A stretch of DNA of 64,000 nt from Pocillopora damicornis. Taxonomy: Eukaryota. Position 1 is the stretch's first letter; each line of letters opens with the position of its first letter. A model generated the notes under the pieces. The model was not told where the DNA came from, ran no database searches, and saw only the letters and a program-made list of their open reading frames with translations. The stretch spans positions 186,001 to 250,000 of the forward strand of contig NW_020847584.1 of NCBI RefSeq assembly GCF_003704095.1, read 5' to 3'. A program made the translations under genes and the position numbers. Positions 23,510 to 55,335 of this stretch are shown here, piece by piece.

Positions 23510-26500
23510 GAAAATTATGCAACTCACCGCTGGATATCATAATAGCTTTGGATGCGTCTGGTAGTGTGCTTAAAGGAAACTGGGATAAAAGCGTAGATTT
23601 TGCCTCGCAGCTCGGCAAGAAGTTACTTTCCTGGAATGCAAAAAGTCGCATAGGAGTCATTGACTTCAGTGAGATTGCTAATGAGGTTATTGAACCATCC
23701 AGCGACCAAAAGCTTTTGGAATGGAAGTTAAATAACCTGAAAAACAATTATCAAAACGGAATCACGAGAACAGAGTTAGCCCTGAAGAAGGCGGCTGAAA
23801 TATTTCAGCGAATCGACCGAACATTCGCGAAAAAACTGCTATTGATATTGACTGATGGTCAAACGACACCACTAAACTACAAGCAAGGAAAAGAACTAAT
23901 TCAGGAGCCTATGGCCAGCCTGAGAACCATAGGGGTACATGTGATTGCTGTAGGTGTTGGCATGTTGGTTGACAGTGAGGAGTTGAACATTATGGCCTCT
24001 GAACCGACAAATGAAAACGTAATTTATTTCCAGGATTATGATGTCCTAAATATGGTGGATTCAATAACTCGGGTCGTTTGTTTAGCAGAAGGTACAAAAC
24101 CAAGCGCTATACTTTGTTCTAAAATAAATTAGAGATATAGAAATTTGAAACAAAAATTCATCTTTTCAATTCTTGTTTTTTTTCTTGATAGATACTTATA
24201 TTGATTATAACTTGTAGCACAAAAGTAAAAAAGGGTAGCACATTATACAAATGAACTTTATGGTATTGATAACTGAATGATAATGATGATGTCTAATGAT
24301 GAAAAGAAGCTCTAATGCTAATAATTATCCCTATTTTATGATAAATCTTCGAGAACCCCTAACTTGTTTCAGAGCCCCAGTCCCCCGAGTCTCCAGTGCC
24401 GTATGTTGCTGCCGTCGAACCTGTCAGCTCAAGTAAGTATGCACATGCTTCTTTTAGATATAGAATTTAAACCAATGAAAGTAACAGTATCATAAAACTA
24501 CGGCAAAGCTCGACGATTTTTTTCAGAAAGTGAAGTCTTGAACTTACGTCATTTGTGTCACCCTCTGGATTATCTTACCATTTGATCTTGCTCATGTTGT
24601 TGTCTACGGTTTTCTTTGGAATCATAAGCCTCTCGCTTTCCTCTCCTGTTTGTACCGGCCGTGTTAACTATCATCTCTCAGTATAGACTGTACTCCTTAT
24701 TTTCCTATAATTCACTCCTATTGGCGTATATATGTCTATCATACTTTTTTTCGATTAGGCTGCGATTAAGCATCAACTCACTTTTCACACTTTCTCAGTA
24801 AACGACATATCCATACCAAATTTGCTCCAAAATCAATGAAGACGACGAGATCCCATCCCCTGCCACCCTTCGAGCGCCATATTAACATGAATTAAAATTC
24901 TTCGCGCGATAAATAATCGTTGTTTTCGTACTTGTTGTAATCTGTGAGTCTTTTTCCTCCAAGTATGCATGTTTCATTCACTAAATAAATTTTCCTAAAT
25001 TCATCTCCTATTTAACGGTGTTAATATTTTAACAAGAATATTCTAGGAATTTTTGGTCATAAAATTGGTTTTTCTTTTTCCTCTGATGTAACAGCATGTC
25101 CTGCTAAGTACACTAAAGTAGGCTGTTTTAAGGATGACATGAAACTCCCACGCCCTCTTCCAAAGTTGCTTTTCACCGACCGCGACTCAGCGACTAAGAA
25201 GTTTAGTGGTAAATCAGTCGACTGGCAGGACTGGAATTCTTACATTAACGACCTCGTCTGCCGTTGTGCAAAGGAAGCAAAAGTTCGCAATTATGCATAT
25301 TTCAGTATTCAGTTCTACGGTAAGTGACATAATCATCAACAGAATTGACACCAAGGTCTGACGCCAAATACAAAAAAGATGAGTCCTTGTAGGCCATGAA
25401 ACAAGCGAAATTTCGGGTAAAGTTTGGCGGTCTTGATAAAAACCCTTTGCTCGACATATGTTCCAAAATTGTATTAGCTTTTTAGTGAAAGCCTGTCGCT
25501 TGAAAACCTTTTCTTCGTGCTAAACTGGTTAATTCTTGTTCCAAAGTTTATTATTTCAAGAGTCATTAGAACTCAAACACGACATATTATTTCAACTTAA
25601 GGTTAAGTAACTTATTTTCTCTACAGGCGAGTGTTGGTCTGGTCCACAGGCGCAAGAGACGTACAACAGGGCTGGTGCCAAAAATACATGCATTACGAGT
25701 AATTTTGAGAAGTGCGATGTTTCTGATTCAAAGATATGCGTTGGAGAAAAGGAAACCAACTTCGTGTATGAAGTACAAAGAGCAGGTAACGTAAAACAGG
25801 ACATCTCAGTAAGAGCTAGGAGTATATAATTTTAACAGTTAAAATAACATCATGTTAACATGATGCTGAAAGCAAGAATCTCATTGCCGGTGATAGATTC
25901 ACACCAAGAGATTATTATATTCTTGGTTCCCACCAAATCTACTTCAGTGAAGAAAAATGGAGGGTAACCAAAATTAGACAAGGTAACACGCTCCTGGAGG
26001 ATCACCCTGAGCCTGCATAACAATTTGGTCACAGAACTGCTAATTCAAGTTCGGTCGTCTGCAACGGTAAGGATGTGTTGGCTAACAGTCTATCATGTTT
26101 TTGTCATAGTCACATATGTATACTTGTATGTCTGTCTGTCTGTTTCTGTAGTATGTATGTATGAATGTACGTATGTATCTATGTATGTATGTAGTGTCCA
26201 TTTTTAAACGATGTCTTACCTCAGTGGGAGGCTATTTGCCTTACGCACTTTTCTCTTTTTCTTGTTGGAAGAGGCTGAACCAATTATATGCATACATGTA
26301 TGTCTGTCTGTCTGTAGTATGCATATATGAATGTACGTCTGTATCTATGTATGTATGTAGTGTCCATTTTTAGACGATGTCTTACCTCAGTGGGAGGTTA
26401 TTTGCCTTACGCACTTTTCTCTTTTTCTTGTTTGAAGAGGCTGAGCCAACATGTGGAGTAGAATATCACAAACTCGGATGTTTCAAAGACAACAAAAAGG

Positions 26501-29144
26501 GCCCTCGGCTTTTAAATAAACTCATATTAACTGATCGCGATTCCAAGTCTCCTGTTTACAGTAATATTAAGATAGACTGGGGGAATTGGAACGCGTACTT
26601 GCCAAAGTTAGCATGCAGATGTGCGGAGAAGGCTGCAGACAACAAGTTCACCCATTTTGGCTTACAGTTTTACGGTGAGGAGGTTTAGTCTTGAACAATA
26701 TTATAGACAAATGTTATTTTAACGAAAACTTTGATAGGTGGAGAGGTTGGACCCAAAAAACAAAACTACCGAGAAAGTAAAGGAACCTCCATTGCCCTAC
26801 AGTTTGGCTTGTTAGCTCAGTTGGTAGAGCACTGCACCGGTATCGCAGAGGTCATGGGTTCAAATCCCGTACAGGCCTGAAGTTTTTCAGACTTTATTTT
26901 CACTACCGCTCAAGTAGTGTTCATTACTGCGAAGATCGCCTTCATATTCACGTCTTTGTCCGCAGTTCAAATCCATGATTTTCATATATTCACAATCAAG
27001 TATTATTTAAGTAGCAAGAACTCAGTTGACTAAGGTTATTGATCACCAGAAGTTTTTGGATTTTACCTCCATAAATAATGTGAGCTTCTAATGGTAAACG
27101 ACTTCAGGGAAACTCTAGTTCCTTAAGCATATACTTATAGAATGACACATTCTATATGATAACACTCATGCATGTGAACTTGTTTTACTTCTCCTGCGAG
27201 TGCTCTTGTATATTGCTCAACTGCTCTCGCAATTGAGTTAAATTGCTGTCATTGCCTATGAAATCTGTATAGCAGAACTTGTTCACCTCGAAGTTTGATG
27301 GAGATTGAAATATCCAAGCATTGCTTGAACGTTCATATCAACTTTTCTCTGGGCATATCCTTCTGAACAGGAGAATGTTGGTCAGGTCCAGAGGCCGCTG
27401 AAACATATAACCAACTTGGTCCTGCTTCAGCAGACAGCTGTTTGACCAGCGACTATCAGCCATGCCCTGAGGATCCAAAATCTACAGACATAGAGTGTGT
27501 AGGAAAACTCTTCGTAAACTATGTTTACACCATAATAAAGAGTGAAGGTAATATCGTTACGTGCAGTTTAGCAGGCGTTGCTTTTACAGAAATTACTAAG
27601 CAGACATGCTTCTCGTTTTACCATTTGAACGGAGAAACTCACAATTCCTTTCCACAGAATAAGGTAGATGATTACAGCCAGTTCTTAAAGGAGGATATAA
27701 CAAAATCTCAATGGATGAATTCTTGCCCTAAGTTTGTAGGGCTTTCAGCATTGCATTCTTGAACAGAAAGTCCGCAGTCAGTCAAGTTGATGAATCTTTG
27801 TCGTTTTCGTTAATATATTGACTTAAGGTTTAACCAAGTTACCAATTAGAGTGGATAAATGAATAAATGAGCCCCGTAGAGAATAGGTATCGACGTGGAT
27901 CGTGCTTCAGATGTAAAAAAAAAATATTGGCACTTTTCCAATGAATATACTGAGTTCTATTTAAGATGTCGAAGGACTGTGATTACCAGGTAGCATGCAG
28001 ACAAACGAGTGACCCACAACAAATGAACGATGGAATTTATCCTTACTCTTGATCTGAATAAGATAAGTGGCCCATGCTATGGTCTCAGCTGGTTGCTTCT
28101 CATAACTCAGCAAGTACGTGCTCGAAAATCAGTCAAGCTGTCGTTACCTTATCTCAGTCTATTGATAACTATTTTCATTTGGTTTAATTTGCAGCGTTTT
28201 ATTAAAACCATCCATTAACCACTTTGTGACTTCTTAGGAATATGTCATACCACTCTGGTTTTTGGGCTTTTTCAGATGCACGTTGTTCAGTTCCTTTTAA
28301 ACCTGTTGGCTGCTTTAAGGATAATCAGAAGAAGAATGCTCGACCACTCGGTGAACTGCTTCTTACATATCGCGACCGAAAAAGTGCCAAAAATAACGGA
28401 ACTGAAATTAATTGGGGAGAATGGGACGTTTACTTGTATGAGTTGGTGTGTCTCTGTGCCCAGAAGGCAAAGGAAAAGAAATACTCCCACTTTGGGTTGC
28501 AGCATTACGGTAGGCGAACACGTGCGACAGAACACACTTGCACAATAAAATCACTGATACGGGTTTTTTTTTTCAAGCCCTAATTTTGCTTGACAAGACA
28601 TTGTAACGTAGAGGAAGGTAGCTGAAAAGTTACCGTCCAATTTGTAAACATTGTAACTAGTGACTCTGGATAGCTTCGTATAGTTAATTCATAAAGTCGG
28701 AATTCAGATATCATCTTAAAACTTCATATAAATGTTTGTTTCCTTAAACCTAAACACCAAAACTTTTAAGATCGCATCGTTTATTCATCTAAAACATGTA
28801 TATTTCCATCAGTTATAGAACAAAATTCCACGTGACGTTCTATTCTCGCTGGATCCCCTGAATCCCAAAAACCGACAAAAAATTAATCCTATTACGCTCT
28901 CTATTTCCCACAAAATATATTCTCTGCCAGGACCCGAAGTACCGGCTACTGTTTGATTCAAAGCAATTTTTATTGTTCCTAAGGTGAGTGCTGGTCGGGG
29001 CCTGAAGCAGGCGAAACATTCAGCAAGGATGGACCTTCAGAGGCAGATAAATGCATTGGTCGAGGATTTAAAACATGTAACGCCTTGGTTGATGACATCT
29101 GTGTGGGAAGGGAAAAGACTAACTTTGTCTTCTCTCTTTACTAG
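23510..29144 (+). CDS. Gene A: predicted secreted protein, VWA + Pro linker + three 8-Cys WSC-like domains (5' exon(s) unresolved)
   Basis: Exons 23510-24091 (whole VWA: LDIIIALDASGS, GITRT, LLILTDG, VIAVGVG), 24373-24432, 25095-25319 + 25627-25785, 26438-26674 + 27371-27547, 28276-28509 + 28984-29144 (TAG). All introns are phase 1. One candidate signal exon is MKIIMRTALLVMFC at ~21954-21996, not confirmed. Confidence 0.85.
26116..26450 (+). repeat. Tandem duplication (period ~166 bp) including TGTC/TATG microsatellites and a splice acceptor
   Basis: ATGTCTTACCTCAGTGGGAGG at 26211 and 26377; GAAGAGGCTGA at 26268 and 26434. Confidence 0.9.
26806..26995 (+). mobile_element. tRNA-derived SINE with a tRNA-like head (GGT at the anticodon position), in an intron of gene A
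   Basis: 26806-26878 folds as a cloverleaf (GGCTTGT/ACAGGCC, GCTC/GAGC, CTGCA/CGCAG, ATGGG/CCCGT). It has an A box TAGCTCAGTTGG and a B box GGTTCAAATCC. C at position 33 and an A-C mismatch argue against a functional tRNA. The ~120-bp body that follows resembles, from recall, an abundant coral repeat. Confidence 0.7.
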
Positions 29145-29431
29145 TACGAAGAAAATAAAAAAGTACAGCAATCAACAGGCTAATTTAAAGTGTCAAGTGG
29201 TTTATGTTGGATATGGCTGGAACCAGAGAATACAAACAACTTAATTGCTCTTACTTTTCGGAAATTCAAAACGGTCCGATTTATCTGGCAAATTAAAACC
29301 TTACGAGGCAGTCCGATTCTTGCATCCACCAGCTTTCTTTTGTCATAGACAATTAGAGGTCAGATAAATTGCGTGTGAATTGACTGACGATATTAAAATC
29401 TTTACCGAGTGTGAATTGCCTTAGGATCGTC

Positions 29432-31392: not shown

Positions 31393-34300
31393 ATGAATGC
31401 ATCATTTTTTCTGGCCTTTTTATTTACATATCTATCAATATCAGGAAAGTCTGACGCTGATTTCCGTAAAGGTATGTTTTGATAATTAACGAAAGAGAAG
31501 GTTTGTGCTTTCTCGCTTTACATGCACTGGACACCCCCTCCCTGAAATGAATAACAGAAAATGAATAACAGAATGTCTCTGGCTACACTGACACAATAAC
31601 AATTTCTCTTCTATTAATAATTTGGGGGAAAATGTTTCCATAAGCTTGGTTTCTTCATCTCTATTTATGGTGATTAATGTTCATTCCACTTCAAGCTAAC
31701 ATTGTTGATTTCGATGGACTTATATATAGATTCATTTCTATTGTCCCTCTGGAAAATATTGTTTTGAAATCATGCAAAGTAAGAGTTAAAAGAGTCACTA
31801 TTGAAGTTCATAAATGGGGAATAACTATAATTTATCATCTCGCTCACTCTGTTTTAGATTGCGTGTGGAAGATAATTTGATATTCTTGTCAGCAGAAATG
31901 CGTTAACTATTCATAAATTTGATAAAATCTGTCACCATTTTTGAACAAGCGTAGGAGTTGTAAAGAGAAAGAAGAATGAGACGTAATCAAAGAGAGATCT
32001 GTAGTAAATTGACAAATCCTGCAAGTTAGTAGGTTCCACAGTTTTTGCAACCCTTTGTCGTTGTCAGACAGCCTTGATACTTGTTTATTCGCAGCTCGGT
32101 AACTTTAGATTGCAGGTGTTAAGATTGTTGGTTGTCCCTTAATATGCCAAACCGCAGGGCATAAAGATTTAGCTTAATCAAGGAGAAGTCACCATTTGAG
32201 GCCGTGAAACGTATGGGTTTATATGCAAATACTAGTTATGGTGAACTTTACATGTTTAAAAAAATGGTCTCGAATAACAAAGATCATTCTTCGACTTTTT
32301 TCCTTGATGTAGACTCTCGTCAATAAAACTATTCCACCCCGCTGATTGTGGCCATGGCAAATTGCTTTTATGTGACTGGTTCTTCGTAACCTTTTAGTGC
32401 AGGTTGACCGACTTTTGCGGGCCGAAAGAGTTTGATTGAACCCTTCTGATTACACAATTATAGACCATATATATTACACTCGGGAGGACGAGTTGTCTCG
32501 CCTTAACTGGTAAAGTAACCCTGTCAGGCGGGACAACTTATTCTTATCCAAGCACCTCAGCTCACCTTCCTGACCCGAGGCTCAGGCAATGAGTATTTCT
32601 TTTTGGGTAAAAAGTAGCGCCAGGAAAATATTAACAACCATCGATAATACTTCGGTCAGACGTGGAAGCAAAAACTCAATACTGATTGTTAATCCTTTCC
32701 TTCGGTCTGCCATTTTGTACAAAATGTAACCTGCCTATCTGTCACGATAGTGACAGATTGGCAGGTTTCATTTTCACCCCACCGCTGGTGAGGGGACAGC
32801 TGTTATAACTCACAACCCTATATCAAAGCTCCGTTAAGTTGTCTCGAGGAGGAGCCTGGTTGCCTCGTGCACCTGAGACCATACAGTAGGGTTTAGCCGT
32901 CTTCTGCATCCTAAACTATAAACTAAGTTATGTTGTAACAAGCTTCCTGCATGTTGTTAGGATCAGCAATGTTAAATGCGTCGTTCAGAAAATAAGATAA
33001 GAAAGATGGTTGAGTTTGAGCTCGTTCATGAAATGAACTTTCCTTTCCATTTCATGAGCGCACTCAAAATTTACCGTCTTTCATATCACGCATGTTTAAT
33101 TCTCAACGTTAGTAGAGGCAATGATTCAATCAATGTGAGAAGGGAAGTGAGGATGGAAAATCACTAATATTTATGAATTTTCACCATTACCGAAGCACTA
33201 AATCTAATGAGACTTTTCATTTATTTTTTAAAGAAAACCCAGCAAATTCTTCCTCTCTACCCATGTCTGTTTCGTGGTCGGAACCTATGTGGAACCAATT
33301 TAATGCATACCAAAAGACTGGTACCGGAATACCTGCTCCACCAACGACTCACAGCACTCCTCAAACTTTACCAGCACTGCAACTCAGAGGACAAGGAGCA
33401 CCAGTAGCTGAACCTGTATCACTGCCTCGACGATATTCTGTGTGCCCTATGCCTACATGCAGCTTTCCATCTATTTGCGTTAAAGTAGCAGTTTATGCGA
33501 CTTGTGTTCCTCCTCCTAATCCATCAGCATCCACCAACAATTCATNNNNNNNNNNNNNNNNNNNNNNNNNNNNNNNNNNNNNNNNNNNNNNNNNNNNNNN
33601 NNNNNNNNNNNNNNNNNNNNNNNNNNNNNNNNNNNNNNNNNNNNNAACTAAAACACTTACGGCAACCTCCACGAGTGTGGTGACCACTTGTAGCGCTAGT
33701 TGCTTAACTGTGGGTAAGTGTACGTTTTTCCGAGACGGAGTGGTGGAGAGGTTAATACAGATTGGCCATGGTTTGATATTTTCTCTTAAGAAAAGAATGG
33801 CAAGGACACCTACGGATTTCGCTGTAGAGCTTTTAATTTTTGCTCAGATAATTTTAGCTGTATGTAATACAATTTAATCTTTCTGGGTATTTTTGGTCCT
33901 TACCAATTTTCCCCTCGAAGAGCTCGCGTCATATCGGCCACAAGCTCCAGCCATGTAATATGAATACAACAGTCAAACGTCTGCGCATGCGAACGTTGTC
34001 ACTACTAGGTGGCGTGCTTTCAGGCTGCCAGTACCAAATTTATCTCACACGAGTTACAAAAACCACACAAGCTAGAAAGTCACGGTTTTAGAACCGCAAG
34101 AACTTTATTGATGTAGTCCAAAACGGAAAGGTGAATCAGCCGGATACCCGTGCTTGAATGAGCTTTGTGTTCAAAAAGTTACAGCAGTTTTGACACAAAC
34201 GAGTTTCCTTTTCCCTAATTTATTTTCCTTTTAACAAATTTCTATAAAAGTCTTTTTGGCTCACAAGGCGAAACAGCAGTTATTTCTATGAAATAGTACT

Positions 34301-40825: not shown

Positions 40826-42219
40826 TCATTTACTATCATTGCGCTTCATTAGCTTTGACGATCTCGATACGGTTAATAATCACCGTCATGAGCAAACCCA
40901 GCTTTTTGCAAAGGCTAATACTAACGGTAGAACAGAGAAAACGAACGTTAGGGAAAACCTTTCGACGGAAATCAGTATCAAAAGCTATGAGTTAAAGATC
41001 TTTGTAATATATTTAAAAAGTTTTCGTACAAAATCTTGCTGGTACCATGACTCCCACACTCATGAAAGCGTTGAAAAGACCAATGCAAACACCTGCTTTC
41101 TGGTAGTATATGGTACGACTCATTGACCATGGCAATATCAGACTTGCGTCATTTCAAAACATTATTTTTGACTGACTGAAAATAAACCCATAACAGAGCT
41201 CATGCTTTAATTCTTATGTTGCACTCGTCCTCTGGTTGAAGCCGAGTTTCAAAGTCTAAACCATCTTTAATGCTTGCTCAGCACTGAAGCAAACAGCTCA
41301 GTCTTTCATAACGTTCTGAGACGTTTTAACAACTGAGAAAATGTCACGCTCTTTTAATATCAAGATAGTATGAAAAAAAAAAAAAAAAAAAACGCCTCCA
41401 CATAATACTGGCGTAAAAGGTTGTGGTATTCAGTTCTCTTTCATTACCTCCCATGGACAGACGATGTTGACGTAATATGACAGTTATTTATCAATAGTCT
41501 TTCGACATGAACAAACAGTTTTCCAATTTAAATTCTTTTGTGTACATTCACGTTTTCATTAGACATCACTTTCAAAACGCACCATGAATTTTCACTTTTA
41601 TCTGCTTTCGATAATCGTATTTACGTCGATATCAAGAAAAAGTGACGGACTCTTCATGGAAGGTGAGTTTAAAGCATTTTAGGCAGACGGATACTTAGCA
41701 CCAGGTAGGCAAAGTTGGTTACCTGTATTAATGTACATGGTTGGTTTGATTTTAAAATTACTCGCACGTCAAAGACTTTTCTACTTTGCAGCGAACTTGC
41801 GAGTTTTCTTTTTCCGTGTTGTATTTTATAGGTTTGATTTGTTTTCGAAGGTACCTTGACTTGAAAGACTCGTAAGCAATAAAAATTTTTGGTAACAGTA
41901 TCGTAATAACATGTATCTCGCGAATGCATTCAAGAAAATTTTAGAGAATCCTTAGGTCATGTTTATGATTATGATTGTTATTGTTTGGTATGCTTGTTAT
42001 TGTAGTGGTTTTACCATATAGCAATGACATAGCCGTATTCTTGAGGGCAAGCCCTTAAAGTCCTATAAGCAAAGCCCTTGACTTATAACGGTTGCAAAAA
42101 ATTAATTCTATAACTTGGCAAAAAAAAAACGATAACCGGTTTTATCTTTGAGAATATCATAAGTTTATCTCTTTGATATTCATCTCACCGAAGTTAGTAT
42201 TCATTGTAATCAGGTGATT

Positions 42220-42450
42220 TGGTTTTATCAACTGAATTGATAATGTAAACTGGCCACCTTAGAGAGTTTCTAAATCTGACGTTACGAGGGTTAGCCCTTT
42301 GTCAGAGCGAAGGAACGTCATCATTCGGTCACCTCAAACGAAGGGAAAACGCTCGAAAAGTCAGCTTTAGAAAGTCTTGATAGTGGCCAATTCNNNNNNN
42401 NNNCCCCCCCCCCCCGTCACAGCACCACAGTTTCTTGAGAAACTTATCCA
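42220..42450. repeat. Palindromic interspersed repeat, copy 2 (broken by a short N gap)
   Basis: TTATCAACTGAATTGATAATGTAAACTGGCCACC...GTTAGCCCTTTGTCAGAGCGAA...AACGCTCGAAAAGTCAGCTTT...CACAGCACCACAGTTTCTTGAGAAACTT aligns with 40585-40825. Confidence 0.65.
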
Positions 42451-43077
42451 CATTATTAATCATAATCACCGCCAACATTAAAGCACTCGCTGAAAATTGA
42501 GAAAAATAAACTCCCACGTTGATTTCTTTAGGATTCCGTCAATATAACAAGCAAGACACCCGTTCTCGATCTTCAATGAAAATTGTCATCAGTGAGAACT
42601 GGGGCGTTATCAGGACAACTTGACAATAGCCCTTGCATAAGTTTGGCTCGCGAGATCCAAACTATCATTAGAACTAATTCAAAGAAAAAGAACAATTTTT
42701 TTGCATTGACCCTTCAAGACATCCTGATCTGAAAAACGGATGCGATGTGTGATTGAAAATGGTCTGATTTAAAGCCTATCTGAATTTATGTCGATAGAAA
42801 GTATACAGTTTAGATACTGAAAGGAAAGGTATTTGTATTTCATTATTAATGAAAAATAAACTTACTTACAAACCATAGAATGAAAACAAACCCTATAACC
42901 GTGACTCTGCTGCGGCGCGTGCAGTATTTTAGTTTCTCGTTCACCCTACAACAGGAGTGCGCGTTTGCTCCTGTTGATGGTTTTCATCCCAAAATGTAAG
43001 TCTTTTAATGACAGAGCTATAAGAAAATGCTTGGGGTCTTGGGAATCTTACATAATAAATCCTATCTATCGTCGCAG

Positions 43078-46000
43078 AGCCTCGGACTGAAATAGAATAT
43101 CAGCCAATAGGGGAAGTCGAACGGAAAGAGATTAACGAGTCATCTGCATCAGAAGTATCCAACAACCCACTTCCAGCTGAGCCCGAGCATGCTCAAGTTG
43201 TCAGTACAGAGCACGTGACAAATATAGATCCATCTAAGACTTCCATGCCTGCATCAGCCTCTATTCAGCTTCCTGGGGTACCACCAGTGAGTGGTAGGCC
43301 CCCGGGTAGCGAAAAGGAACCACTTCCCCCTCCTTCCGTTGAGCCAGGTGAGCCGTTTTTCAACGATTAAAATCAAGAGAATATAAAGAGGGATGCTTCC
43401 AGGCTCCACCCAAGTTTTTGATAAAATATATGTACACATGTAGTCTCACGAACAAAAGTCTGTTTTCTAAAGGTTTACTTCAATCTGATACGCGAAGGCA
43501 AAATAGTGGGGTATTGTGTAGAGATACGTTTCTCTGATGAAAACAACTTTTGAAGGGATTATTGAACAAGATTTCGCAATGAGACACCTTACATTATAGA
43601 AGACTGATGACACTACCTTCCACTTCCGTCTAAAACCAAAATTATCTCAAACGGAGACGACGTCTCCCAACCAACACTCTGTTTACCACCGATCATTTTC
43701 CCTTGATTAAGTGACTCGTAAATGTAGATTATGAACAAGAGCAGATCTCAACATCCCAGGCGTCAAAGCTCGCCAGTTTTCCAACACCCCATGTCAAAGC
43801 ACATGATATAATTTGAGTCTGCGTATGTCACTGCTCATATGATTCATTAAATAAGTTTCACTACTCCTAGTTAAAAATCACGATAAATTTCATCTATAAC
43901 AGGGTGTTTTGATATTATCAACTCAGATGATACTACTAAATTACCCTGTCGTACTCTTCCACCGACGCAATACCGCAGTTTCTTTAGAAACTTGCCTCCT
44001 TTATTTTTTTATTTTTTTATTTCATATATACTTTTTCTAGCACTTTAATATGCGAAACTGCTAACACTCAGCAGCTGAAAGCTAGATAAAGACGTTTTAC
44101 CCATCAAGTAATCTAACAACCAATTTTTTTGGTCGGCTTTCTTACATTCTCACTTATATGATATATTGGTGACACAAAAACAAAAAAAACCTACCGATTA
44201 TTATTAACTACTGGTCATACATGAAGAAACAGAAGTAACTGTCATGAATTGTGCTGACAAAAATAATATGAACCTAAGACTAAGAGAAATATTCCCATAG
44301 AGCCACCTGTGGTACAACAACCGCAACCTCCAGTCCCTTTGACGGCACCATCGACATCGACCACTGGTAAGACCCCTATAGTGCTCCATTTGTTTATAAT
44401 CGTTGAGAGCATTTACACTGATAGAATGAGTCTACCTCATAACCCATTACAGACATTGGGTCTTAATTTGTTAGTGAGCACTACGATCGTCAAAGCATAT
44501 TGAATGTTGCCCTTATTTGTGTCGTTAGATGATATGAAACTTGTAACGTTGCTACAATGTACTAGACAAGATAACAAGAGACATTAAATTAATTGTACAT
44601 TATTCAAATCATCATCTTAGACTCTTGCTCTTACCTCTTTACCTCTTTTTCATTGCAGCTGGGTGCCATAAAGTGATGGACTTAGGAATCCTTATGGACT
44701 CCTCTCATAACATCTCTCCGTCGCTTTGGGAAGAAGAGAAGTCAATTGTTGTGACTGTCATGGATAAACTTGACATAACTCTTCTTGGAACACATATGAG
44801 TGTAATGACACTCAGTTCAGAGGTGGAATTTCCGATCCCATTCAATGGATACAGGGACGAGGTTGATCTAAAGAGGAAAATAGCAGAGTTGCCTTATAAT
44901 TACCACTCTGGATTGTCTCGGGTAGATCTTGGATTGAGTGCAGTCAAGGAGCGAATGTTTGATCCTCGGGTTGGAGTTAGGGCCAAAGTGCCAAGGGCTC
45001 TTTTGATGTTTACCAACGGACTAACAGACGGTGCGAAAACACTCATTATTACATTAATTTATTTGAAGTTTAAGAAGGATTGTGTCTTTGCTTGGTTCAA
45101 TTCTTTTTTGGTGTCGTGGTCAGACAAAAGTAAATAACATGATGGATCAGGTTCAAATACATGCATAAATAACTGGATGTTCAGTTGAGGGGATCACTCA
45201 TTCAGAGGGAAATTATCTTGCCTTCATAATTATTTTATTTCAACCCTTTGACATATAGTCCCTACCTCCCCCAGCAGATTTGGGAGTGGAATCAGTGATC
45301 ATTCACTATACTTTTGAACACTCTAATTGGAAACTGACCCTGGATACTTTCAAATCATTCCTTTATCCATTTATTTATTTACTATCTATTCAGTTATAAA
45401 GTCATTCACCGTTTTCAAGTTCCTTCAGTTTGCACAGAATTTTCTTTGAAGAATTACATTCGGCGATGAAGTACTGGCATAACATCTACTCATGTCCACG
45501 CTTGTACAGCATAATTGGTGTTAATCAAAGAGGAAAAAAATCATATTTTATTTTTTCCCACAAAAATATGGTCATCAAGGAGGCCGATGAGGGGGACACT
45601 AACGGGGACCTTTCCTTACACAAATTTCTGTCCACTATATCCACCAAACCCGATAATTAATCAAAGGGGGTCTTGAGGTTCCTTTAAACTGTTGTAATTG
45701 AAAAGAATAAAAATATGATACATGTAACAACTTAATTACGGCTGAGTTAAAACAGGTACTTTAGGGTAAAATGGCTAGTATCGTCATGAGACACCTTGTG
45801 CAACAAAAACGGTCCAAAAGAATTACATCACTAACTACATTTAGAAATGTAATATCGCTAACCTATGCGTATACGTATCTCTCCTTGGGAAAATATTTTT
45901 AGAAAAACGATCCCTCGACAGACATGACATGTTAAAGAAATCTTTAAGAAACCCATCCTTAAATCATATCGAAAAGAGTAATACCCGTAAGACATATTAA

Positions 46001-49000
46001 TAAAGCCTTCGCCTCAAAGCTTAATGCTTTGCCTAAAAATTTTTCTTTGAGTTTGAAACCAAAGTTAGTATTCTTTATAATCCCAGTAACATAACTTTGT
46101 CGGGGACAAAACTCTAACATAACTCCATGGGAACTTGTAACTTACTATTGGAAAAACTCTGACCTCATTTCAGGATCACAAAGTGCAAAGATTCTTCAAG
46201 CTGTCGATGATCTCAAAGTTGCTCAAATAAAAGTCATATACGTTAAATTGGGAAATGTAACAAATCAAGATTTCTTAACGACTGCAAGAAAGAATTCTTT
46301 GGTGTTCAGCGAGAATGACATTGATGGCCTTTCAGGGGCGTTACTGGATACATGTGTTGAAATCTGCAGCAGTGGTATGTAAGGAGATTGTTTGGTTGCT
46401 TTAAGCTATTTTTCTTTTAGCCCAGAAAGTATGAACGCAACTGCCTGACTGACATAAAGCAGGGTTTGTGTTGAGATGAAAAAAATTGTTCATTGTCCAT
46501 TACACTCACTGATTTCCCTCGGTTTCAAGGTTAAACGAATATGAATTTTCAAAACTTGTAGGCTAAAAAAAAGTTATGTTTAAACGAAACAGAGCAGAAT
46601 CGAAAAAGGTAGATTTTCCGCCATTGGAGGTTAATTATGCTTCTGCATGCGAGATAAGCCAAAATTCACCTATTTGCAAATTAATATTTCAAGGTTAAGA
46701 CGTCACTTCTCAATCTCAATCTAGCTTTGTGAATACAACTGGGCTGCAACATAGTCTGCTGATGCGCCAAACGTGTATTAAACTTCCCTTAACCGTTCTC
46801 CACGGGTGAAAGATGGACAAAATCGAGAGTATTAAATGGCTCTTCCTATAGAATTTCCTCGACAACTTTTTAATTATGATATAGTGAAATGCTGGCGTTT
46901 TAACTTTTCTAAGATGCTCTTTAGCTGCGCAAATAAAACAATTCTCAAATTCGATAAATTAAACTAAATTGTAACCTTTTTTTCTGACATATTTTTTAAA
47001 TGTTTGGTGATATTTTCTTCAAGAAAAGAGTACAAAACCAGTTACATTAGCAGCATCAGTACCACCCCTTGCACCTACACCTTCTCCTTGGCCTGCCACT
47101 CAACCTGCACCAGCTCCCTATCCTGCACCCATACAGCAGCCTCCTGTCCAATGTCCAATTCCAGGGTGCAGCTTTCCATTGGTTTGTGTCCAAGCTTCGA
47201 TTTATGCGACTTGTGTTCCTCCTCCTAATCCATCAGCATCCACCAACAATTCATNNNNNNNNNNNNNNNNNNNNNNNNNNNNNNNNNNNNNNNNNNNNNN
47301 NNNNNNNNNNNNNNNNNNNNNNNNNNNNNNNNNNNNNNNNNNNNNNNNNNNNNNGGAGAGACATATAACCGGGCTGGAAGTTCTGATCAGTGTGTCACCA
47401 AAGGTTACGAAAAGTGTGATCCCAGCGACAAAGAAGAGTGTGTCGGCGATAAGAACGTCAATTTTGTTTATGGAATCGATGTTACAGGTACTTGAGTAAA
47501 ATTTAAATTAGCTTTTGTCATATATTGATACGGTGCCGGCATAATAGAATATCTCATGTTCCAAAACACTTATGCTACTCTGTGCTGTGTCTTCTTCAGA
47601 AATCACTTTTAGCCTCAGGAATTTCAAATTTGCTTATGCTCGAGCATATGCATGCTTTTTGTTAAAAGCTCGAGCTTTTCTTTATATTTAGTTATTTGTT
47701 ACAAAGATCGATTGTGAACAAGTGGATTAAATTCCCTGTTTTTTACATCAAATAAAAATCTCACCTCGTCGACATTTATGCATCTATAATTGTAATGGAA
47801 CCGAATAGAATCCATTGCGATCTGCAGTCATACGAGTGATTGCAAAATTGAACGAACGCGTGGCGGGAGCCCGATTTGTCAAGTAAGAGTATGATTACAT
47901 TCTGAATTTGACAATTACACTAATTAACTATGACCATTTCAAGTTCCGAAAGAAACAAATACAGTTATCTGAGAAAATGTCTCCGATATAGACAATGTCT
48001 TCCGATATAGGCAATGTCTAAAGTAAAAAATTATTTCATTTTGGAAATTCCCTGGTTTTGTTGGGTAAGTGGTTGTTGCTATGGTTATTGTAATCAATTC
48101 TGTGATTGGCGAGTTTAGCTGAGTGGACTTAATATGGGTGGCTGCTTTAACTGCCGATTACAGAAGTCCGATCAAAGCCAACTGTCTGAGTTCATTGTCT
48201 GATTAAAACTCGACAGAATAACTGGTGAAAAATATAGCAGCTAGTGCACTAATCATATTTGAGGAAATTGTAATAGATCGATATTGACACGAAATTTGCC
48301 CCTCGACCGACCAAAATTCCAAAGTCATTTTAGCACGGGTCTGCTATGAAATAAAGGCTTGTTAAGGTTGATGGAGAATTGAAGCGTCTAACCTTGTCAC
48401 CTTGTGTTTTAAGAAGTTGTCTTAACACTCCTTTGCATTTTATTGCGGCATATGATTTGCTCCACAGTACCCGTGACCACTCCACCTCGGACTCCCTCTC
48501 CCGCCCCACCGGTGACATTAGGTACGTATGAATTACTTCCTTCAGGCAGTATCCAAACATTTTCATCAAAAGGAAAACAGGAAAAAATGAGCGATAACCA
48601 ACTGATGACCGACAATCTTCATCTTTTTATTCTCATCAGCGATAACGCAATAAGCATTTGAATATGATTTCAACAAAAATATAATTACAATCGGTGGCCT
48701 CCGTTTTCGATTCCATCTCCTTGAGTGCAAAGATGTATTTTAGTTATGAAGAAGCACAGTAGTAGAAGGAGTGGTCACGACAAAAGGGGCATTTCTACCT
48801 AATGTGTATCATATATATGCCATTCTTGTTCCACAGTAACAGTGTCCACACCGACACAGCCTCCTTCTCCAACATCAGAAGTCAAACCCGGTAAGTCAAG
48901 AGTCACAATTCTATTACTCTACAGCTAACACCAAGCAAGATAGCTACAGTGAAAGCCTTTTAAAGTACAACTTCTGCCTAGATCATGAATAGTAACTGTA

Positions 49001-52000
49001 TCGAATTACTTACAACCGCAAACAACATCTCAACAACAGTTTGTGCTTGCTGTGGGTTTTTTTTGTGCGAGTAGAATGTGCTTGGCCTTCCAATCATCTT
49101 TCCAATCGACTGACTTATTTGGAATTTAATTTCGTTATCTGCGACATAATGAAAATGAAAACTCTTACTTCATTTTTTTCCAGAACCAACACCTAGTCGC
49201 CCAGCCACACCTACAGTGTCCTCCTCAGTGACACCAAACCCAGCAACTCCGGGTACTGGTTTAACTTTTGACTTGTCTGTAGGAGCTAAAAGTTTAATTA
49301 GACATTTGAAAATCTACTCAGTTTTGCAATAATGGCTCTTCTTTTGAGGAGCATGATTTAAAAAATATTAAGCCTACGTTTTCCTTCGTGTTTGTATCCT
49401 GCAGATGACCACTGATCCATTAATTCTATGGTTTCCTGAAGCTGAAATTTTTGCCCAGTTGCCTTTTATTCTAGTTATCATGGCTCTCAATGCTTTTGAT
49501 TATCTAAACAAACCTGTCCTTGTTCTTCTCTTTGCAGGCTGCACAGTGAATTACACCAAATTAGGTTGTTTCAAAGATGACAGAAAGAAACCCCGCCCAT
49601 TACCAGAGCTACTTTCCACTGATCGCGACTCACGTAGCAAGGTCTTCAGCGGAAAGACCATAGACTGGAACAATTGGGACACATATATGATTGGTTTGGT
49701 TTGCCGATGCGCTGAGGCAGCTAAAGCAAAGAAGTACAACTATTTCAGCCTTCAACACTTTGGTAACTATCCAATTATTAAATTATAGGAGGTGAAGTGT
49801 GAATACAGTTAAAACCCACATATAAGAACCTAGTTATTTCAATTTGGCCCCCATAGGTTCTTATAGAAATGGTGTTTACTATGAAATTAGGCTACCTAGG
49901 TATGAAATATACGTGGTTTCTTACTGTCCATCTCAATTCTATCCAGGCGAGTGTTGGTCTGGACCGGAAGCTGGAGAGACATATAACCGGGCTGGAAGTT
50001 CTGATCAGTGTGTCACCAAAGGTTACAAAGAATGCGATCCCAACGACAAAGAAGAGTGTGTCGGAGATAAGAACGTCAATTTTGTTTATGGAATCGATGT
50101 TACAGGTATTCGAGTAAAGTTTCATTAGCCAGTGTAAAGTATTGACACGAAGCCGTTATACTTACAGTATTGACTAGTATAAATTACTTCTTATCCTTTA
50201 TGACGAAGTTTCTCGAGAATTAAACACTTTTATCCTTAGAACTTTCAAATTTGTAAAGAACAATGGTTCTTACGTTCGAGCTTAAAAGTATTATGATAAA
50301 ACGCGAGCTTTTTTCATATTGCAATGTTGATTTCAACATTTGATTTAATAATCGTTAATGAACAAATGAACCAAATACTCTGTGCGTTACTCAATAATAA
50401 CTCAACCCGTCGGCAATGTTGCGTTTCACAGGAAATTTACCCTTCAGCCACCCAAAATTAAAGGCTTGTTAATATTCGCTGCAAAATTATCGCGTCTAAC
50501 CTTGTTTCTAAGGAAGTTCGTGTTTTCAACCTGTTTCATTGGCACATCTTCAAAGTGGTACAGATTAACTCAGACTCCCTCTCCTAACCCAGGTGTAACA
50601 TCACGTGTGACATCTCGTGTGACATCACGTGTGACATCACGTGTGACATCACGTGTGACATCACGTGTGACATTAGGTGTATTGAGTCTCTTCCTTTCAG
50701 CAGCATCCAACATTTTCATTAAAAGATAAACGGGAGAAACTGATGCGATAACTAACTGATAACTGATAATCTCCACTGTTTTTTTCATCAGCAATAATGT
50801 AAAAGCATTTGAAATAGGAATTCAACAATAATTATAATTTGTCAATTATCTGTGTTCGATTCCAACTTCTTGAGCAGTGTTCTCTAGTTATGAAGCCCTA
50901 CAATACCAGCAGGAGTGGTGAAAGTTAAAAGAACATTTTCGTTTGATGTACATCATAATTATGTTATTTCTTGTTCTACAGGAACAGTGACCACTCCCAC
51001 AAAGCCTCCTACGCCGACACCACCAGCAGAACCCTGTAAGTCAGGATCACTATTGATATCCTCTCTCTCTCTCTAACTTCGTTGTTCCGTAAAAACAAGT
51101 GAGGTAACCTCAGTGAAAACTGTATATTGTAGAAATGTTGAACCCGCATCATGAATAGTGACTGCATCAAATGACTGATGACTAGACAACACTATGTCAA
51201 ATGCTACCAGCTTAATCAAAACCAAAAAGCCTACCTGAGAGGCAGCTTTCATTTTGAAATATGATCCTTTTCCAATAAAGCAGCTTGGTTTATGTTGTCG
51301 CTGGCTCAGCTTAAAATAGCCATTTACTTGGTTTTCTCTCCATCAGCATGTGATCAAGCCTTGGATATCGGGGTCGTCATTGATTCGTCAGATAGCATAA
51401 CATTGGAGGATTACAACCTTTGTTTGAAGTTTGTCGCCGATTTAGCCAAGCGTTTTAAAGTATCTGAACAGGAGACTCATTTCGGTGCTATAGTATTCAG
51501 TACAACACCACAGCTTCAATTCAGTTTCGCAGACAAAGAATTTTACAAACTTAAACGCCTGAGAAAGAAGATAAGGAGCTTCCCTTATTTAGCAGAAGGA
51601 ACTAGAACAGACTTGGCCCTTACGCTTGCTGACCTGGAGCTGTTTTCCGAGCAGGGAGGGGACCGGCTCGATAAGCCTGATGTTTTGATTGTTATTACTG
51701 ATGGAAGAACCCACCCTGTGTTAAGCAAACCGTACCCAGAGGTTTTACAACCACTTCAGGTAAATAATCCAGTCATCTGCAACACCTTTAAGGGAGTTTT
51801 CCTATGATTTTAACGCCATTAGTGTAACGAAAACGTGTGCCATCATATGTTCCGTGGTGTGTCAGTCAAAAGAATACATAAGGAAATTTTAGCTTCAAGA
51901 ATGTTTCCTTTTACCCGATAGGCTAAGAATGTTAGAGTCATAGCTGTTGGTGTCGGAAAGGATGCGGATAGTAAAGAGTTAACAGCCATAGCCATGAATG

Positions 52001-55000
52001 ATAAGAATCACGTGTTGAAGGTCGATCAGTACAAGGATCTAGTTAAAATTCTTGACATTATTTTAAAAGAATCGTGCCACAAAGGTAAGTTTGGCCCAAA
52101 CCGATCATGTTGCGTTATGGTGTTTGATATTCTCTCTTTGGGATGAAGGAGATTCACGGGTATCGTGAAGAATATTAGCAGGAGTGACGAGGAGAAAGCC
52201 TACCTTGTGATATATTAGTGAGTCCAAATCTCGCACTCGACATATTTGGTACCAAGCTCTATGGATTTCGCATATTCCATGTTTGCACCTTTTTCCTACC
52301 ACAGAAAAAAAGCACTTTTTTAATTCCATTTTGATGTTGGATGTGCTTTAAACTTGGCTTAAATTAGAATTGATATAATATGAGGATTTTTGTTATTACC
52401 CACAGCCACACCTCCTACCGCCATTACAACACCTCCTCCGTCCCCTGCGATGGCTGCTAACCTTCGTAAGTTGTATTAGACGGATAACCATCTACTTTGT
52501 AAGCAAACTTATGCATTACTTATGATCTAGTATTAGTCAAATATAATAAAATTGACTAAAAAAGTTCCGTGTTTCCTTTTCTTCCAGGTAAATGTAACAT
52601 CGAGTACCAAAAGCTTGGCTGCTTTGTCGATAAGCAGCCTAAGACTAGCACACTTGCTCTACCTGAAAAGATGTTGAACGAAGTCGTCAACTGGGATCAG
52701 TGGAATGTTTGGCTTCCAGATTTTGTGTGCAGATGCGCCAATTTAGTTTATGAGAACAACTATAATGTGTTTGGAATTCACCTTTTCGGTATGTTCACCC
52801 GTTTCCTCTTTAAAACCATTAAATCTGACCAAAATCTCTAGTAATCTTATGGCTTTAGACATTATCACAGCCACAGAAAAAAGTAATTGAAAAAAAAAAA
52901 AGAAAAAAAAAAGCCATTTGACTCTCTTAAACCTGTGGTAACTTTCTAGGAGAGTGCTGGTCCGGTGTCAAGGCTGGTGATACTTACAATATGTATGGTA
53001 CAGCAGAGGAATGTTTAGACACAAACCAACAGCAGTGTGGCGTTCAATCAGTCAGAGAGTGCTCAGGAGACCAGAATTCCAACTTCGTCTATCGCATCAT
53101 CATCTCCCAAGGTCGGTTTTGGTAGAAATTCTGAATTGTTTCCGGTGGGCTTCGAGCGATTATTTTTTTTAGCACCGTCGTTTGTTATCGTTATAAGAAG
53201 AGATTCCTTCTCAGTGCTTCATGATTACCCGACACAATTCTATTGTTCTATTGTCGTTTTGGCGGTTCACGGTATTTTACTCTTTGCAAGCCGGTCTAAC
53301 ATTGCCAACTTCCAAAAGTAGAATGCAAAGACTAAGCTCATCCTTGTTTTCTCAACAGGGGCACAAGTAGAACCCTCTCCTGTTCCTGAAACAGCAAAAA
53401 AGAGACATGGATTGAAGGGTAAGATTTTTTGTCCCTTTTATTGATATCAACTCAAATGTGAAAAAAAGAATCTAAAAAATTTCGTTAAGGGGTGTAAACC
53501 CATAATAAAACCCATAATAAAGAGCTAAAAGGAGATGCAATAATTTTTTGTTACAGAGAACTGTCTGGTGGACTTCATCAAGAGAGGTTGTGTTAACGAC
53601 TTGCAAAGTCGGAGGCCTTTGCCGCAATTGATGTTCACAGATCTTGACATCAACAACGCTAAGTTCAGCGGTTTCCCAGTGGACTGGGGAAGCTGGAATA
53701 GTTATATGGATGATGTTGTTTGTCGGTGTGCCGAGATTTCGCGGTCAAAAGGTTTTGATTATTTTGGACTGGGAAATTTTGGTGAGTCTCTGTAATGTAA
53801 CGACGTGTCCTTGTAGCTGGCCTGACTGAGGCAGAGTTAAGCGTGGACGAGTAATTTTATTAAGGTTTTATTTCTCATTTATCATGATTGTGAGTGGCAC
53901 CATGTTAAATATCATCAAGTTATTGTCATTTCAAGTCATTACTTGTTCAGATCTTTACTGCCTCATTTGGAGTCAATTCAATTTTTCTTTGTCTTTTAAA
54001 TTCTATTTACATTAATGTGACAGGTGAATGTTGGTCAGGGAAAGGTGCTCAAAAGACATATGACAAAGAAAACACTTCTCCATTCTGCATTACAAAAGAA
54101 TTTGCTGAATGTAATGCAGAAGATGAACATGTTTGCAGTGGAAACAAAACTACTGCGTTTATCTACAGTGTGAAGGAGAATCACAACCCCAAGAAAGGTA
54201 TTCATGGAAACTTACACGAGATTGAGTGATGAGTCATTAGTCACATTCTGTTTACTAATTTTCTGCATCCTAAAGTACTGATGAAAGAAATGTTATTTTC
54301 ACCTGCGGATGATATTCAAGAAATACTCCTCGAGGGTAGGCTGCATTTAAAGAAAATTGCAGAAAGAAACCCGTAACAATTTATACTCGGACGGAATTTG
54401 ACCGCAACTTGCTGTTGCCTCTTCCTCTGCATTAGGTATTACTTTGTGGCTCATGGCCTTAATATAAAAATTTTGAAATAGAGAATATCCTCCTCGATAA
54501 CGTAACTAAATTTTTAGCAAATGTTTTCTTGTTAACCTTATCTCTAAAATCCGTCCTCAGTGTTTTGGAATTTTTTGTTTTTTAGAGAAGAATTGCTTCA
54601 CCCAATTTCAAAATGTCGGGTGTTACGAAGACAAGCAAATCAGTCCTCGTCCAATACCAGAACTTATTTTTACCGATATGGATATTAATTCACCAAAATA
54701 CAGCGGCAAAAAAGTGCAGCTGGGGGAATTGGACACCTATATTGACGACGTTCTCTGCCGGTGCGCTGAGCGTTCCCAGAAGCTTGGTTACGAGTACTTT
54801 GGAGTGCAGAATCACGGTGAAGAATTTTATCTTGGTGTTAAATTTATAACGATGATTTTGGTGACGGTAAACGTCGGTCTTACACAGGTTGTTGATTATT
54901 CATCTCACTTTCAGCGAATAATCTTTGCGAACCGATAGCATGTTTTAGCGTAATTTTGCAAAATCTCTTTTGAGCAACTATATTTTCTTCCCGTTAATTC

Positions 55001-55335
55001 TGATTTAAACAACAAAAGTAATTTCCTTGTAAACTGATTTGTCTCGGTTTTTGATATTTAAGAGGAATCAGAAAGTGGAAGGATTATTATGGAACGTTAT
55101 ATTTTTTGTAGGTGAGTGTTTTTCCGGAAACAATGTTGAGCAAAGCTACAGCAAGGATGGTTCATCAAAGCAATGTATCACAAGAGACTTCCAGCAGTGC
55201 CCAGAAATAAAACCTAGCAGTAAAGAGACTCAGCAAGACTGTATCGGAGTGCAAGGCTCTAACTATGTTTACCGCATCAGAAATTTGGCGAAAGAAAACA
55301 AAATGGACGCTGAGAAGTTGCATCTAGGAAAGTGA
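43078..55335 (+). CDS. Gene C: large mosaic, probably extracellular protein with two VWA domains, Pro/Thr linkers and at least five 8-Cys WSC-like domains (5' end unresolved; spans a gap)
   Basis: Exons 43078-43347, 44301-44366, VWA1 44659-45030 + 46174-46374, 47024-47254 [gap], 47355-47487, 48468-48521, 48837-48890, 49184-49252, 49538-49762 + 49947-50105, (50593-50676), 50982-51035, VWA2 51347-51759 + 51922-52084, 52406-52465, 52588-52788 + 52950-53111, 53359-53418, 53557-53781 + 54024-54197, 54586-54816 + 55112-55335 (TGA). Continuity across the gap at 47255-47354 is assumed. Confidence 0.75.
43900..44005. repeat. Truncated copy 3 of the same repeat family
   Basis: TTATCAACTCAGATGATACTACTAAATTACCCTGT...CAGTTTCTTTAGAAACTTGCCTCCTTTATT matches 40736-40826. 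Confidence 0.65.
47785..48288. mobile_element. ~500-bp insertion (probable non-autonomous element) in one copy of a duplicated intron
   Basis: The flanks (TCACCTCGTCGACATTTATGC / GACACGAAATTTGCCCCTCGACCGACCAAAATT) align with contiguous sequence at 50402-50459 in the paralogous intron, which lacks the insert. AATTGTAAT occurs near both ends. Confidence 0.6.
50595..50676 (+). repeat. 12-bp tandem repeat (GTGACATCACGT) x ~6.8
   Basis: Directly visible; units start at 50595, 50607, 50619, 50631, 50643, 50655 and 50667. Confidence 0.95.

Follow-up and report, generated by a model that had tools for sequence, protein, structure and literature searches.

To understand what three adjacent genes of the coral Pocillopora damicornis encode, the identity of a repeated domain with eight cysteines in their products has to be settled. 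The genes lie within a stretch of 64,000 nucleotides of contig NW_020847584.1 (positions 186,001 to 250,000), which is called the window here. The initial annotation of positions 23510 to 55335 described predicted secreted proteins combining VWA domains with an 'ECWSG' repeat, and proposed that they form an undescribed recognition or matrix system. Is the repeat a new domain, and do the genes make up a new system? Our analysis shows that the genes are real and expressed, that they are already catalogued as uncharacterised proteins, and that they represent a modest variant rather than a new kind of system. With moderate confidence, we read the locus as three paralogous Pocillopora genes in tandem that encode secreted modular extracellular glycoproteins, in which multivalent arrays of WSC domains are combined with VWA domains and would cross-link matrix or mucus or act as lectins. 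Exons were joined only for frame checks and for the local hidden Markov model (HMM), and the searches and fold comparisons used exon pieces or database proteins.

Each complete copy of the repeat consists of two exons (alignments A1 and A2). The N-half exon carries the first cysteine, GC[FY]xD, RPLP, DWxxW and CRCA, and the C-half exon has ECWSG at its start and N[FY]VY at its end. A phase-1 intron separates the halves at the same point in all nine complete copies, between the first and the second base of the Gly codon preceding ECWSG, and the outer boundaries of the repeat unit are likewise phase 1. The nine joined copies are open frames of 120–150 residues with exactly 8 Cys each. Their pairwise identity is 30–67%, and the similarity is far above chance. 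The consensus first read from the DNA matches both alignments and also our family set, which contains 385 near-full-length domain instances from retrieved proteins.

The domain seemed unrecognised in the raw sequence because the exon pieces give no Pfam WSC call: no Pfam family was reached with the pieces alone, the best being WSC at 14.3 bits for one C-half exon, and the gathering score of PF01822 is 27.8 bits. Full-length products reach this score, with 33.2 bits for P0164 (gene 1), 38.7 for P0165 (the WSC array of gene 1), 37.9 for P0005 (gene 2) and 58.0 for P0163 (genes 1 and 2), and the match covers only profile positions about 20–82, roughly the final two thirds of the profile. Since the single-domain protein P0054 stays under the threshold at 21.2 bits and exon pieces do not exceed 14.3, the threshold is reached only by summing tandem copies. 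Half-domain (A1, A2) and whole-domain (A3) profiles found nothing significant among Protein Data Bank (PDB) sequences, the best match being ScWsc1 with an E-value of 0.9. A search of 1.84 billion representative proteins with the N-half profile returned 676 relatives.

The comparison of predicted folds was decisive. P0054 and copy 2 share 73% identity over the C-half exon (copies are numbered as in the lists below), and the AlphaFold model of P0054 has a mean predicted local distance difference test score (pLDDT) of 72.9, with 85–94 in the core. The seven top Foldseek matches of this model are all WSC domains, from yeast Wsc1, Kremen and fungal glyoxal oxidase. VIA-align gave Z scores of 9.0–10.3 over 90–102 residues between the model and solved WSC domains, and the next fold, PAN/apple, reached 4.6. 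The model of P0165 (pLDDT 89.6) has identical top matches with a probability of 0.97–1.00, and the ESM Atlas also points to WSC. On these models, the repeat is a WSC domain, in agreement with the derivation from WSC suggested initially and with PF01822 on the full-length products. A new fold distinct from WSC was ruled out by the matches of both models and of the ESM Atlas. A fold unrelated to WSC, which had been named as grounds for rejecting a lectin-like reading, was not encountered, since the top structural matches were all WSC.

The repeat departs from the canonical domain in several places. In ScWsc1, the disulfides C49–C69 and C53–C71 tie the helix to strand 4, and C27–C86 and C90–C98 are specific to WSC domains, which also share a conserved CGG motif (PMC9024836). 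When the family profile was aligned with ScWsc1 using HMMER, the second Cys of CxC corresponded to C49, the Cys of EC to C69, and two loop Cys to C86 and C98, whereas C53 faced a non-Cys residue and C71 faced the Ser of ECWS. The eight Cys columns are almost invariant in the 385 instances, with no Cys at the C53 or C71 columns; the Cys of GC and the three of the C-terminal loop are invariant in the nine copies and present in 348–385 of the 385 instances, and these four align with the ScWsc1 sequence. Two new Cys have appeared: the first precedes GC by 8–9 residues, and the second precedes the C49 equivalent by two. Strand 1 and the helix are separated by an insert of about 25 residues that contains DWxxW and has high confidence in the models. 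CGG is replaced by CVG, CSG or CIG, with the second Gly retained, and CGG itself is found in copy 4 only. The deviations listed in the initial annotation (CxC for CxxxC, ECWS for ECxC, an extra N-terminal Cys and the DWxxW insert) were therefore all borne out by the alignments and the 385 instances. We infer that the equivalents of C53 and C71 were lost as a pair, so that one helix-to-sheet disulfide is gone, and the two gained Cys are predicted to pair, newly bridging the N-terminal extension and the helix. A further Cys, four residues downstream of the sixth (column 101), is present in 75 of the 385 family domains and restores the canonical C-x3-C spacing of C86/C90; these domains may be a sub-branch with a different loop disulfide.

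The relatives show how widely this form of the domain occurs. They were found in stony corals (Pocillopora, Stylophora, Acropora, Montipora, Porites, Oculina and Desmophyllum), sea anemones (Nematostella, Actinia, Exaiptasia and Actinostola), octocorals (Dendronephthya and Paramuricea), hydrozoans (Hydra and Clytia) and a scyphozoan (Rhopilema). Among the proteins looked up by name, all full-domain relatives are cnidarian, and the sole non-cnidarian is a tunicate protein that matches only 20 profile positions. By sequence, the repeat is a conserved cnidarian WSC subtype of pan-cnidarian range. It is not the lineage-expanded domain first supposed, and a Pocillopora-specific expansion was ruled out by named relatives across anthozoans, hydrozoans and a scyphozoan. 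In the genome of the window, the N-half profile has 57 matches, about 30 of them with E-values below 1e-10, in several tandem clusters. Further tandem clusters were observed on contigs C4107 (295–337 kb, with at least 9 N-half exons), C2983, C4125, C1899, C3843 and C4317. VWA and WSC domains also occur together in Oculina, Acropora and Hydra, and 'coadhesin-like' proteins with the order WSC-TSP1-VWA share the subtype.

The family is already visible in public databases. RefSeq has gene models, and those matching this locus are all annotated 'uncharacterized'; precomputed Pfam annotation assigns PF01822 to most relatives, and a Stylophora homologue is named 'WSC domain-containing protein' in UniProt. 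The word 'system' was also too strong for what is a cluster of paralogous genes only.

The window is AT-rich eukaryotic DNA with introns, from a genome assembly of 234 Mb in 4393 contigs. A six-frame motif scan combined with the stop-free segments of the window placed the repeat exons on the plus strand from 25095 to 55335, and the related exon series, including the VWA exons, occupies 23.5–55.3 kb of the same strand. The plus-strand inventory comprises four VWA domains, nine complete copies of the 8-Cys domain and one half copy cut by a gap. Ten copies had been counted at the outset; nine of these stand as complete, and the tenth consists of the last 42 residues of a C-half exon beside the gap. 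In-frame stops after copies 3, 5 and 9 fit the three adjacent same-strand genes originally proposed, as do the congeneric RefSeq models. RefSeq and GenBank models of Pocillopora verrucosa, P. damicornis and P. meandrina matched the window with 92–100% identity in local tblastn. In a self-comparison, VWA2 with copies 4 and 5 pairs with VWA4 with copies 8 and 9 at 67–76% nucleotide identity: the cluster originated by segmental duplication.

Gene 1 corresponds to the RefSeq "uncharacterized protein" XP_066025026.1 (638 residues) and ends at a stop at 29142. Position 23510, where the cluster was initially taken to begin, does fall in the VWA exon of gene 1, but the signal-peptide exon lies further upstream, at 21339–21422. 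The features of gene 1 are as follows.

21339–21422, plus strand: gene 1 exon 1, which has the start codon and encodes a hydrophobic signal-like peptide (tblastn with P0163 residues 1–28, 96%; translation)
23509–24090, plus strand: gene 1 VWA1 exon with intact DxSxS/T/D of the metal ion-dependent adhesion site (MIDAS) (PF00092, E 3.8e-25; P0164 residues 27–221)
25095–25785, plus strand: WSC-type copy 1 (N-half 25095–25319, C-half 25627–25785)
26438–27547, plus strand: WSC-type copy 2 (N-half 26438–26674, C-half 27371–27547)
28276–29144, plus strand: WSC-type copy 3 and gene 1 end (N-half 28276–28509, C-half 28984–29141, then stop)

The P. damicornis RefSeq model XP_027058841.1 (P0163, 1544 residues) fuses two genes, with gene 1 as residues 1–637 and gene 2 as residues 639–1544. 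P. verrucosa has separate models of 638 and 903 residues, and the in-frame stop at 29142 ends gene 1; the fused model is probably an annotation artefact. A 170-bp tandem duplication (26114–26449, 91% identical) was also seen in an intron of gene 1, where it overlaps the acceptor of the copy 2 N-half exon.

Gene 2 corresponds to XP_058950079 (903 residues), a RefSeq "uncharacterized protein" that was once automatically named 'streptococcal hemagglutinin-like', and its stop is at 39825. Its features are listed below.

31393–31470, plus strand: gene 2 exon 1, which has the start codon and encodes a signal-like peptide (P0005 residues 1–26, 100%; translation)
33224–33712, plus strand: gene 2 large Cys/Pro/Ser/Thr-rich exon, split by the gap 33546–33645 (model comparison; left flank resembles 47167–47254)
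34575–34625, plus strand: gene 2 short exon ahead of VWA2 (P0005 residues 406–422, 100%)
34762–35175, plus strand: gene 2 VWA2 first exon, MIDAS intact (Pfam E 2.1e-21)
36441–36605, plus strand: gene 2 VWA2 second exon (P0005 residues 560–614)
37059–37136, plus strand: gene 2 linker exon (P0005 residues 613–638)
37417–38702, plus strand: WSC-type copy 4 (N-half 37417–37641, C-half 38523 to about 38702)
39290–39827, plus strand: WSC-type copy 5 and gene 2 end (N-half 39290–39520, C-half 39655–39824, then stop)

No model matching gene 3 was present among the proteins retrieved by the database searches. The features of this gene are given next.

43077–43301, plus strand: gene 3 probable early acidic/Pro-rich exon (local tblastn, 40% identity to Acropora P0154, E 1.7e-9)
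44664–45035, plus strand: gene 3 VWA3 first exon, MIDAS degenerate (Pfam E 1.7e-16; 64% identity to Acropora P0003 residues 90–213)
46191–46376, plus strand: gene 3 VWA3 second exon (P0003 residues 224–285, 45%)
47011–47254, plus strand: gene 3 Cys/Pro-rich mucin-type exon, entering the gap 47255–47354 (paralogue of the gene 2 exon)
47355–47487, plus strand: partial WSC-type copy 10, 3' part of the C-half exon (directly after the gap; spliced onward in RNA)
48468–48521, 48837–48890 and 49184–49252, plus strand: three short Pro/Thr/Ser-rich linker exons (GT..AG joints in RNA; open frame)
49538–50105, plus strand: WSC-type copy 6 (N-half 49538–49762, C-half 49947–50105; joints in RNA)
50982–51035, plus strand: Pro/Thr-rich linker exon from copy 6 to VWA4 (RNA joints)
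51347–52084, plus strand: gene 3 VWA4, MIDAS intact (exons 51347–51759 and 51922–52084; Pfam E 3.1e-22; RNA joints)
52406–52465, plus strand: Pro/Thr-rich linker exon (RNA joints)
52588–53111, plus strand: WSC-type copy 7 with a shorter insert (N-half 52588–52788, C-half 52950–53111; RNA joints)
53557–54197, plus strand: WSC-type copy 8 (N-half 53557–53781, C-half 54024 to about 54197; 72.5% nucleotide identity to copy 4)
54586–55335, plus strand: WSC-type copy 9 and gene 3 end (N-half 54586–54816, C-half 55112–55332, then stop; 74–76% nucleotide identity to copy 5)

The exon at 43077–43301 is orthologous to the alternative second exon of the Acropora model P0154, and the Acropora relative of VWA3 (P0003/P0154) is named 'VWFA domain-containing protein'. 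A signal exon of gene 3 was sought in 39900–44663 and was not found.

The cluster is expressed as spliced polyadenylated RNA. Contigs from four RNA runs of three studies contain eleven GT..AG joints on 47355–53354, and all predicted splice sites of copies 6 and 7 were confirmed by these contigs. The runs contain 25–39% of the sampled words of 49400–52200, as expected of exons only. The joined RNA-backed exons from 47355 to 53111 form an open frame of 582 codons with no stop, in the order partial copy 10, three linker exons, copy 6, a linker, VWA4 in two exons, a linker and copy 7, with the transcript continuing. VWA4 and at least copies 10, 6 and 7–9 are thus part of one spliced gene 3 transcript. 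The five RNA-confirmed linker exons encode Pro/Thr/Ser-rich peptides of 17–22 residues; this composition supports the O-glycosylatable stalks proposed initially and is consistent with O-glycosylated spacers.

Two further observations were made in gene 3 introns. At 47955–48154, RNA depth spikes in all four runs, reaching up to about 1750. The sequence there belongs to a dispersed repeat of about 150 bp that occurs hundreds of times in the genome at 80–86% identity, and it has no Rfam match; an intronic RNA gene was rejected here in favour of a dispersed element resembling a short interspersed nuclear element (SINE) or miniature inverted-repeat transposable element (MITE). A 12-bp tandem repeat at 50550–50650 (within 50370–50726) lies between copy 6 and the next linker exon. 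One of its frames reads as repeated Val-Thr-Ser-Arg, and it is skipped by the RNA joints.

Three assembly gaps interrupt the locus. The gap at 33546–33645 lies inside one large gene 2 exon. Its flanks are not contiguous, because about 253 residues of the congeneric model fall between them; the 100 N stand for roughly 0.75 kb of coding repeat, and the apparent common frame across the gap is meaningless. The left flank of the gap at 47255–47354 is 87.5% identical to that of the first gap, so both gaps start at the same point of a paralogous exon. Its right flank opens partway through a WSC C-half exon, of which the last 42 residues are visible (47355–47480) and which has 89% identity to 49973–50155, at copy 6. 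Besides what is left of the mucin-type exon, this gap conceals an N-half exon, the beginning of a C-half exon and one intron or more, so coding sequence is missing. The gap at 42394–42403 lies between genes 2 and 3, amid short direct and inverted repeats. Such short dispersed repeats, in direct and inverted orientation, were seen around this 10-N gap at 40587–40832, 42213–42311 and 43915–44011 and are probably transposon debris. Neither the reference assembly nor one of the RefSeq models can be relied on at this locus: two mucin-type exons are collapsed, and genes 1 and 2 are fused in the model.

Outside the cluster, open segments resembling a myosin motor and MyTH4/FERM were observed upstream on the minus strand (1–19200). 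Downstream of gene 3, Pro/Thr/Ser/Cys-rich open segments lie on the plus strand at 58482–59470, where no WSC or VWA motif was seen; they may be part of a further secreted protein gene.

The VWA assignment is clear. The first exons of the four domains score 61.3–89.5 bits with PF00092 against a threshold of 23.8, with E-values from 1.7e-16 to 3.8e-25, which agrees with the four domains counted initially. Genes 1 and 2 have one VWA domain each, and gene 3 has two. In the alignment, the MIDAS is intact in VWA1, VWA2 and VWA4, so the metal-dependent adhesion partner that had been proposed holds for three of the four domains, VWA3 being degenerate. Genes 2 and 3 also contain a Cys/Pro/Ser/Thr-rich mucin-type segment, and all gene ends are arrays of 2–3 divergent cnidarian-type WSC copies with short Pro/Thr/Ser-rich linker exons between them. 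No transmembrane segment was seen in the readable parts of the genes.

From these parts, a working mechanism can be proposed. The WSC arrays would act as multivalent binding modules for glycan or, less likely, protein, and the VWA domains with an intact MIDAS would bind a protein partner via a metal ion. The proteins might in this way cross-link or decorate an extracellular layer such as the surface mucus, the glycocalyx or the mesoglea. Known WSC ligands are beta-glucan, for fungal lectins, and Dkk1, for Kremen (PMC9024836).

Several points weigh against this proposal. Solved WSC domains have no obvious glycan pocket (PMC9024836), and the fold does not guarantee that a glycan is bound. VWA3 has DSSHN in its MIDAS, with Ser for Thr and Asn for Asp. 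The hydrophobic N-termini of genes 1 and 2 were called signal-like from visual inspection alone, disulfide pairings cannot be read from the models, and the link from VWA3 to the rest of gene 3 spans the gap at 47255–47354, across which a shared transcript cannot be demonstrated. Searches with RefSeq, UniProt and LOC identifiers from Pocillopora, Stylophora, Nematostella, Exaiptasia, Acropora and Hydra, or with domain words, found no paper on the family; papers on coral tandem duplications, spatial expression in P. acuta, TSR proteins of the Hydra head, the Nematostella tryptome and nematosomes contained nothing on it.

Other roles have to be weighed against a matrix or mucus cross-linker. The arrays could be pattern-recognition lectins that bind beta-glucan, chitin or algal cell-wall glycans of microbes or symbionts, with the clusters diversifying under host–microbe selection. 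Beta-glucan binding by fungal WSC lectins (PMC9024836) would fit this role, as would the about 30 strong genomic copies in several tandem clusters and the divergence of copies within this cluster to 30–67% identity; a host 'WSC domain' protein is lower at high temperature in P. acuta (PMC5792016), although it is not tied to this subfamily. However, no known signalling or effector domain is attached, and the family is also found in the non-symbiotic Nematostella and Hydra vulgaris, so we consider recognition possible but rather doubtful. A bolder version, in which the relocated disulfide and the structured, aromatic DWxxW insert give the cnidarian subtype its own ligand specificity, would make it a distinct lectin class for mucus, microbial or Symbiodiniaceae glycans, with a diversifying repertoire common to all cnidarians; this is speculative, and we think it quite unlikely. 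The proteins might instead be protein-binding adaptors, with a Kremen-like WSC domain that binds protein in a matrilin-like protein–protein cross-linker. The best structural match is indeed the Kremen WSC domain, which contacts Dkk1, the absence of an evident sugar pocket in WSC domains (PMC9024836) points the same way, and VWA domains bind proteins. Yet the Kringle-WSC-CUB context of Kremen is absent, and lectin-like multivalency is the more typical setting for tandem arrays carried by mucin-like stalks; we regard an adaptor role as unlikely.

Two more specialised roles were considered. Proteins with VWA and other extracellular matrix (ECM)-type domains occur in coral skeletal proteomes (PMC4890752), and the VWA domains here are 40–45% identical to those of coadhesin-like proteins among the homologues, as would be seen if the proteins were part of the skeletal organic matrix and acted in calcification. 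A skeleton-specific role is nevertheless unlikely because close homologues are present in non-calcifying cnidarians (sea anemones, a soft coral, hydrozoans and a jellyfish). In the skeletal proteome of Acropora digitifera, moreover, the only mention of WSC is a REJ/PKD1-like protein (PMC4890752), and action in calcification is improbable. 'WSC domain proteins' have been reported in the venom of the sea anemone Stichodactyla haddoni (PMC6627431), where they are not tied to this subfamily; with the heat-affected P. acuta protein, they hint that cnidarian WSC proteins may be secreted or respond to stress. The genes of the window have no toxin-like domain, and a function as nematocyst, venom or mucus secretion components seems very improbable. 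Cross-linking of an extracellular layer remains the reading that we favour.

Much is known of WSC domains from fungi and from Kremen, but they have hardly been studied in early-branching animals. The conserved subtype described here, so far seen complete only in cnidarians, is set apart by its altered disulfide framework and its additional surface element, and it occurs repeatedly alongside VWA and TSP1 adhesion modules. The genes form a concrete family that can be cloned, and they are candidates for binding glycan or matrix at the surface of the coral, the meeting place of mucus, microbes and symbionts. The practical value is moderate, as neither domain is of a new kind and the genes are in the databases already.

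The coral repeat has the same fold as fungal Wsc1 sensors and WSC lectins (PDB 7PZ2, 9N3U; Z 9.0–10.2). The motifs GC (on strand 1), EC and the final VY are conserved in it, as are the Cys of the helix and three Cys of the long C-terminal loop; an aromatic-rich surface and a frequent arrangement in tandem arrays are also shared. Unlike the fungal domains, it has no equivalents of C53 and C71, two additional Cys, the DWxxW insert of about 25 residues and mostly CxG; the coral proteins are animal and predicted to be secreted, without a transmembrane sensor context, and a single domain falls under the Pfam threshold. The WSC domain of Kremen1/2 (PDB 5FWS) is the best structural match (Z 10.3 over 90 residues, root-mean-square deviation 2.6). 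Kremen, however, is a transmembrane modulator of Wnt with the architecture Kringle-WSC-CUB and just one WSC domain, and the coral proteins combine VWA with 2–3 tandem WSC copies and mucin-like linkers; its architecture was not encountered, Pfam finding only VWA and WSC on the full-length products. PAN/apple arrays (factor XI, plasma kallikrein, the N domain of HGF) resemble the repeat in core fold and tandem layout and appear as second-tier structural matches, but only with Z of about 4.6, and the coral repeat has the WSC-specific long L5 loop with its predicted disulfides.

On the VWA side, the cnidarian TSP1-VWA proteins named 'coadhesin-like' or 'cartilage matrix protein-like' have VWA domains 40–45% identical to those of the window, and the members P0023, P0192 and P0196 carry the same WSC subtype beside TSP1 and VWA. 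The genes of the window lack a TSP1 repeat and carry several WSC copies along with mucin-type segments. Matrilins, collagen VI and other VWA matrix proteins are secreted matrix cross-linkers with MIDAS-bearing VWA modules, as predicted for the coral proteins; the coral proteins differ from these in having no EGF, coiled-coil or collagen parts and in using WSC domains as the partner modules.

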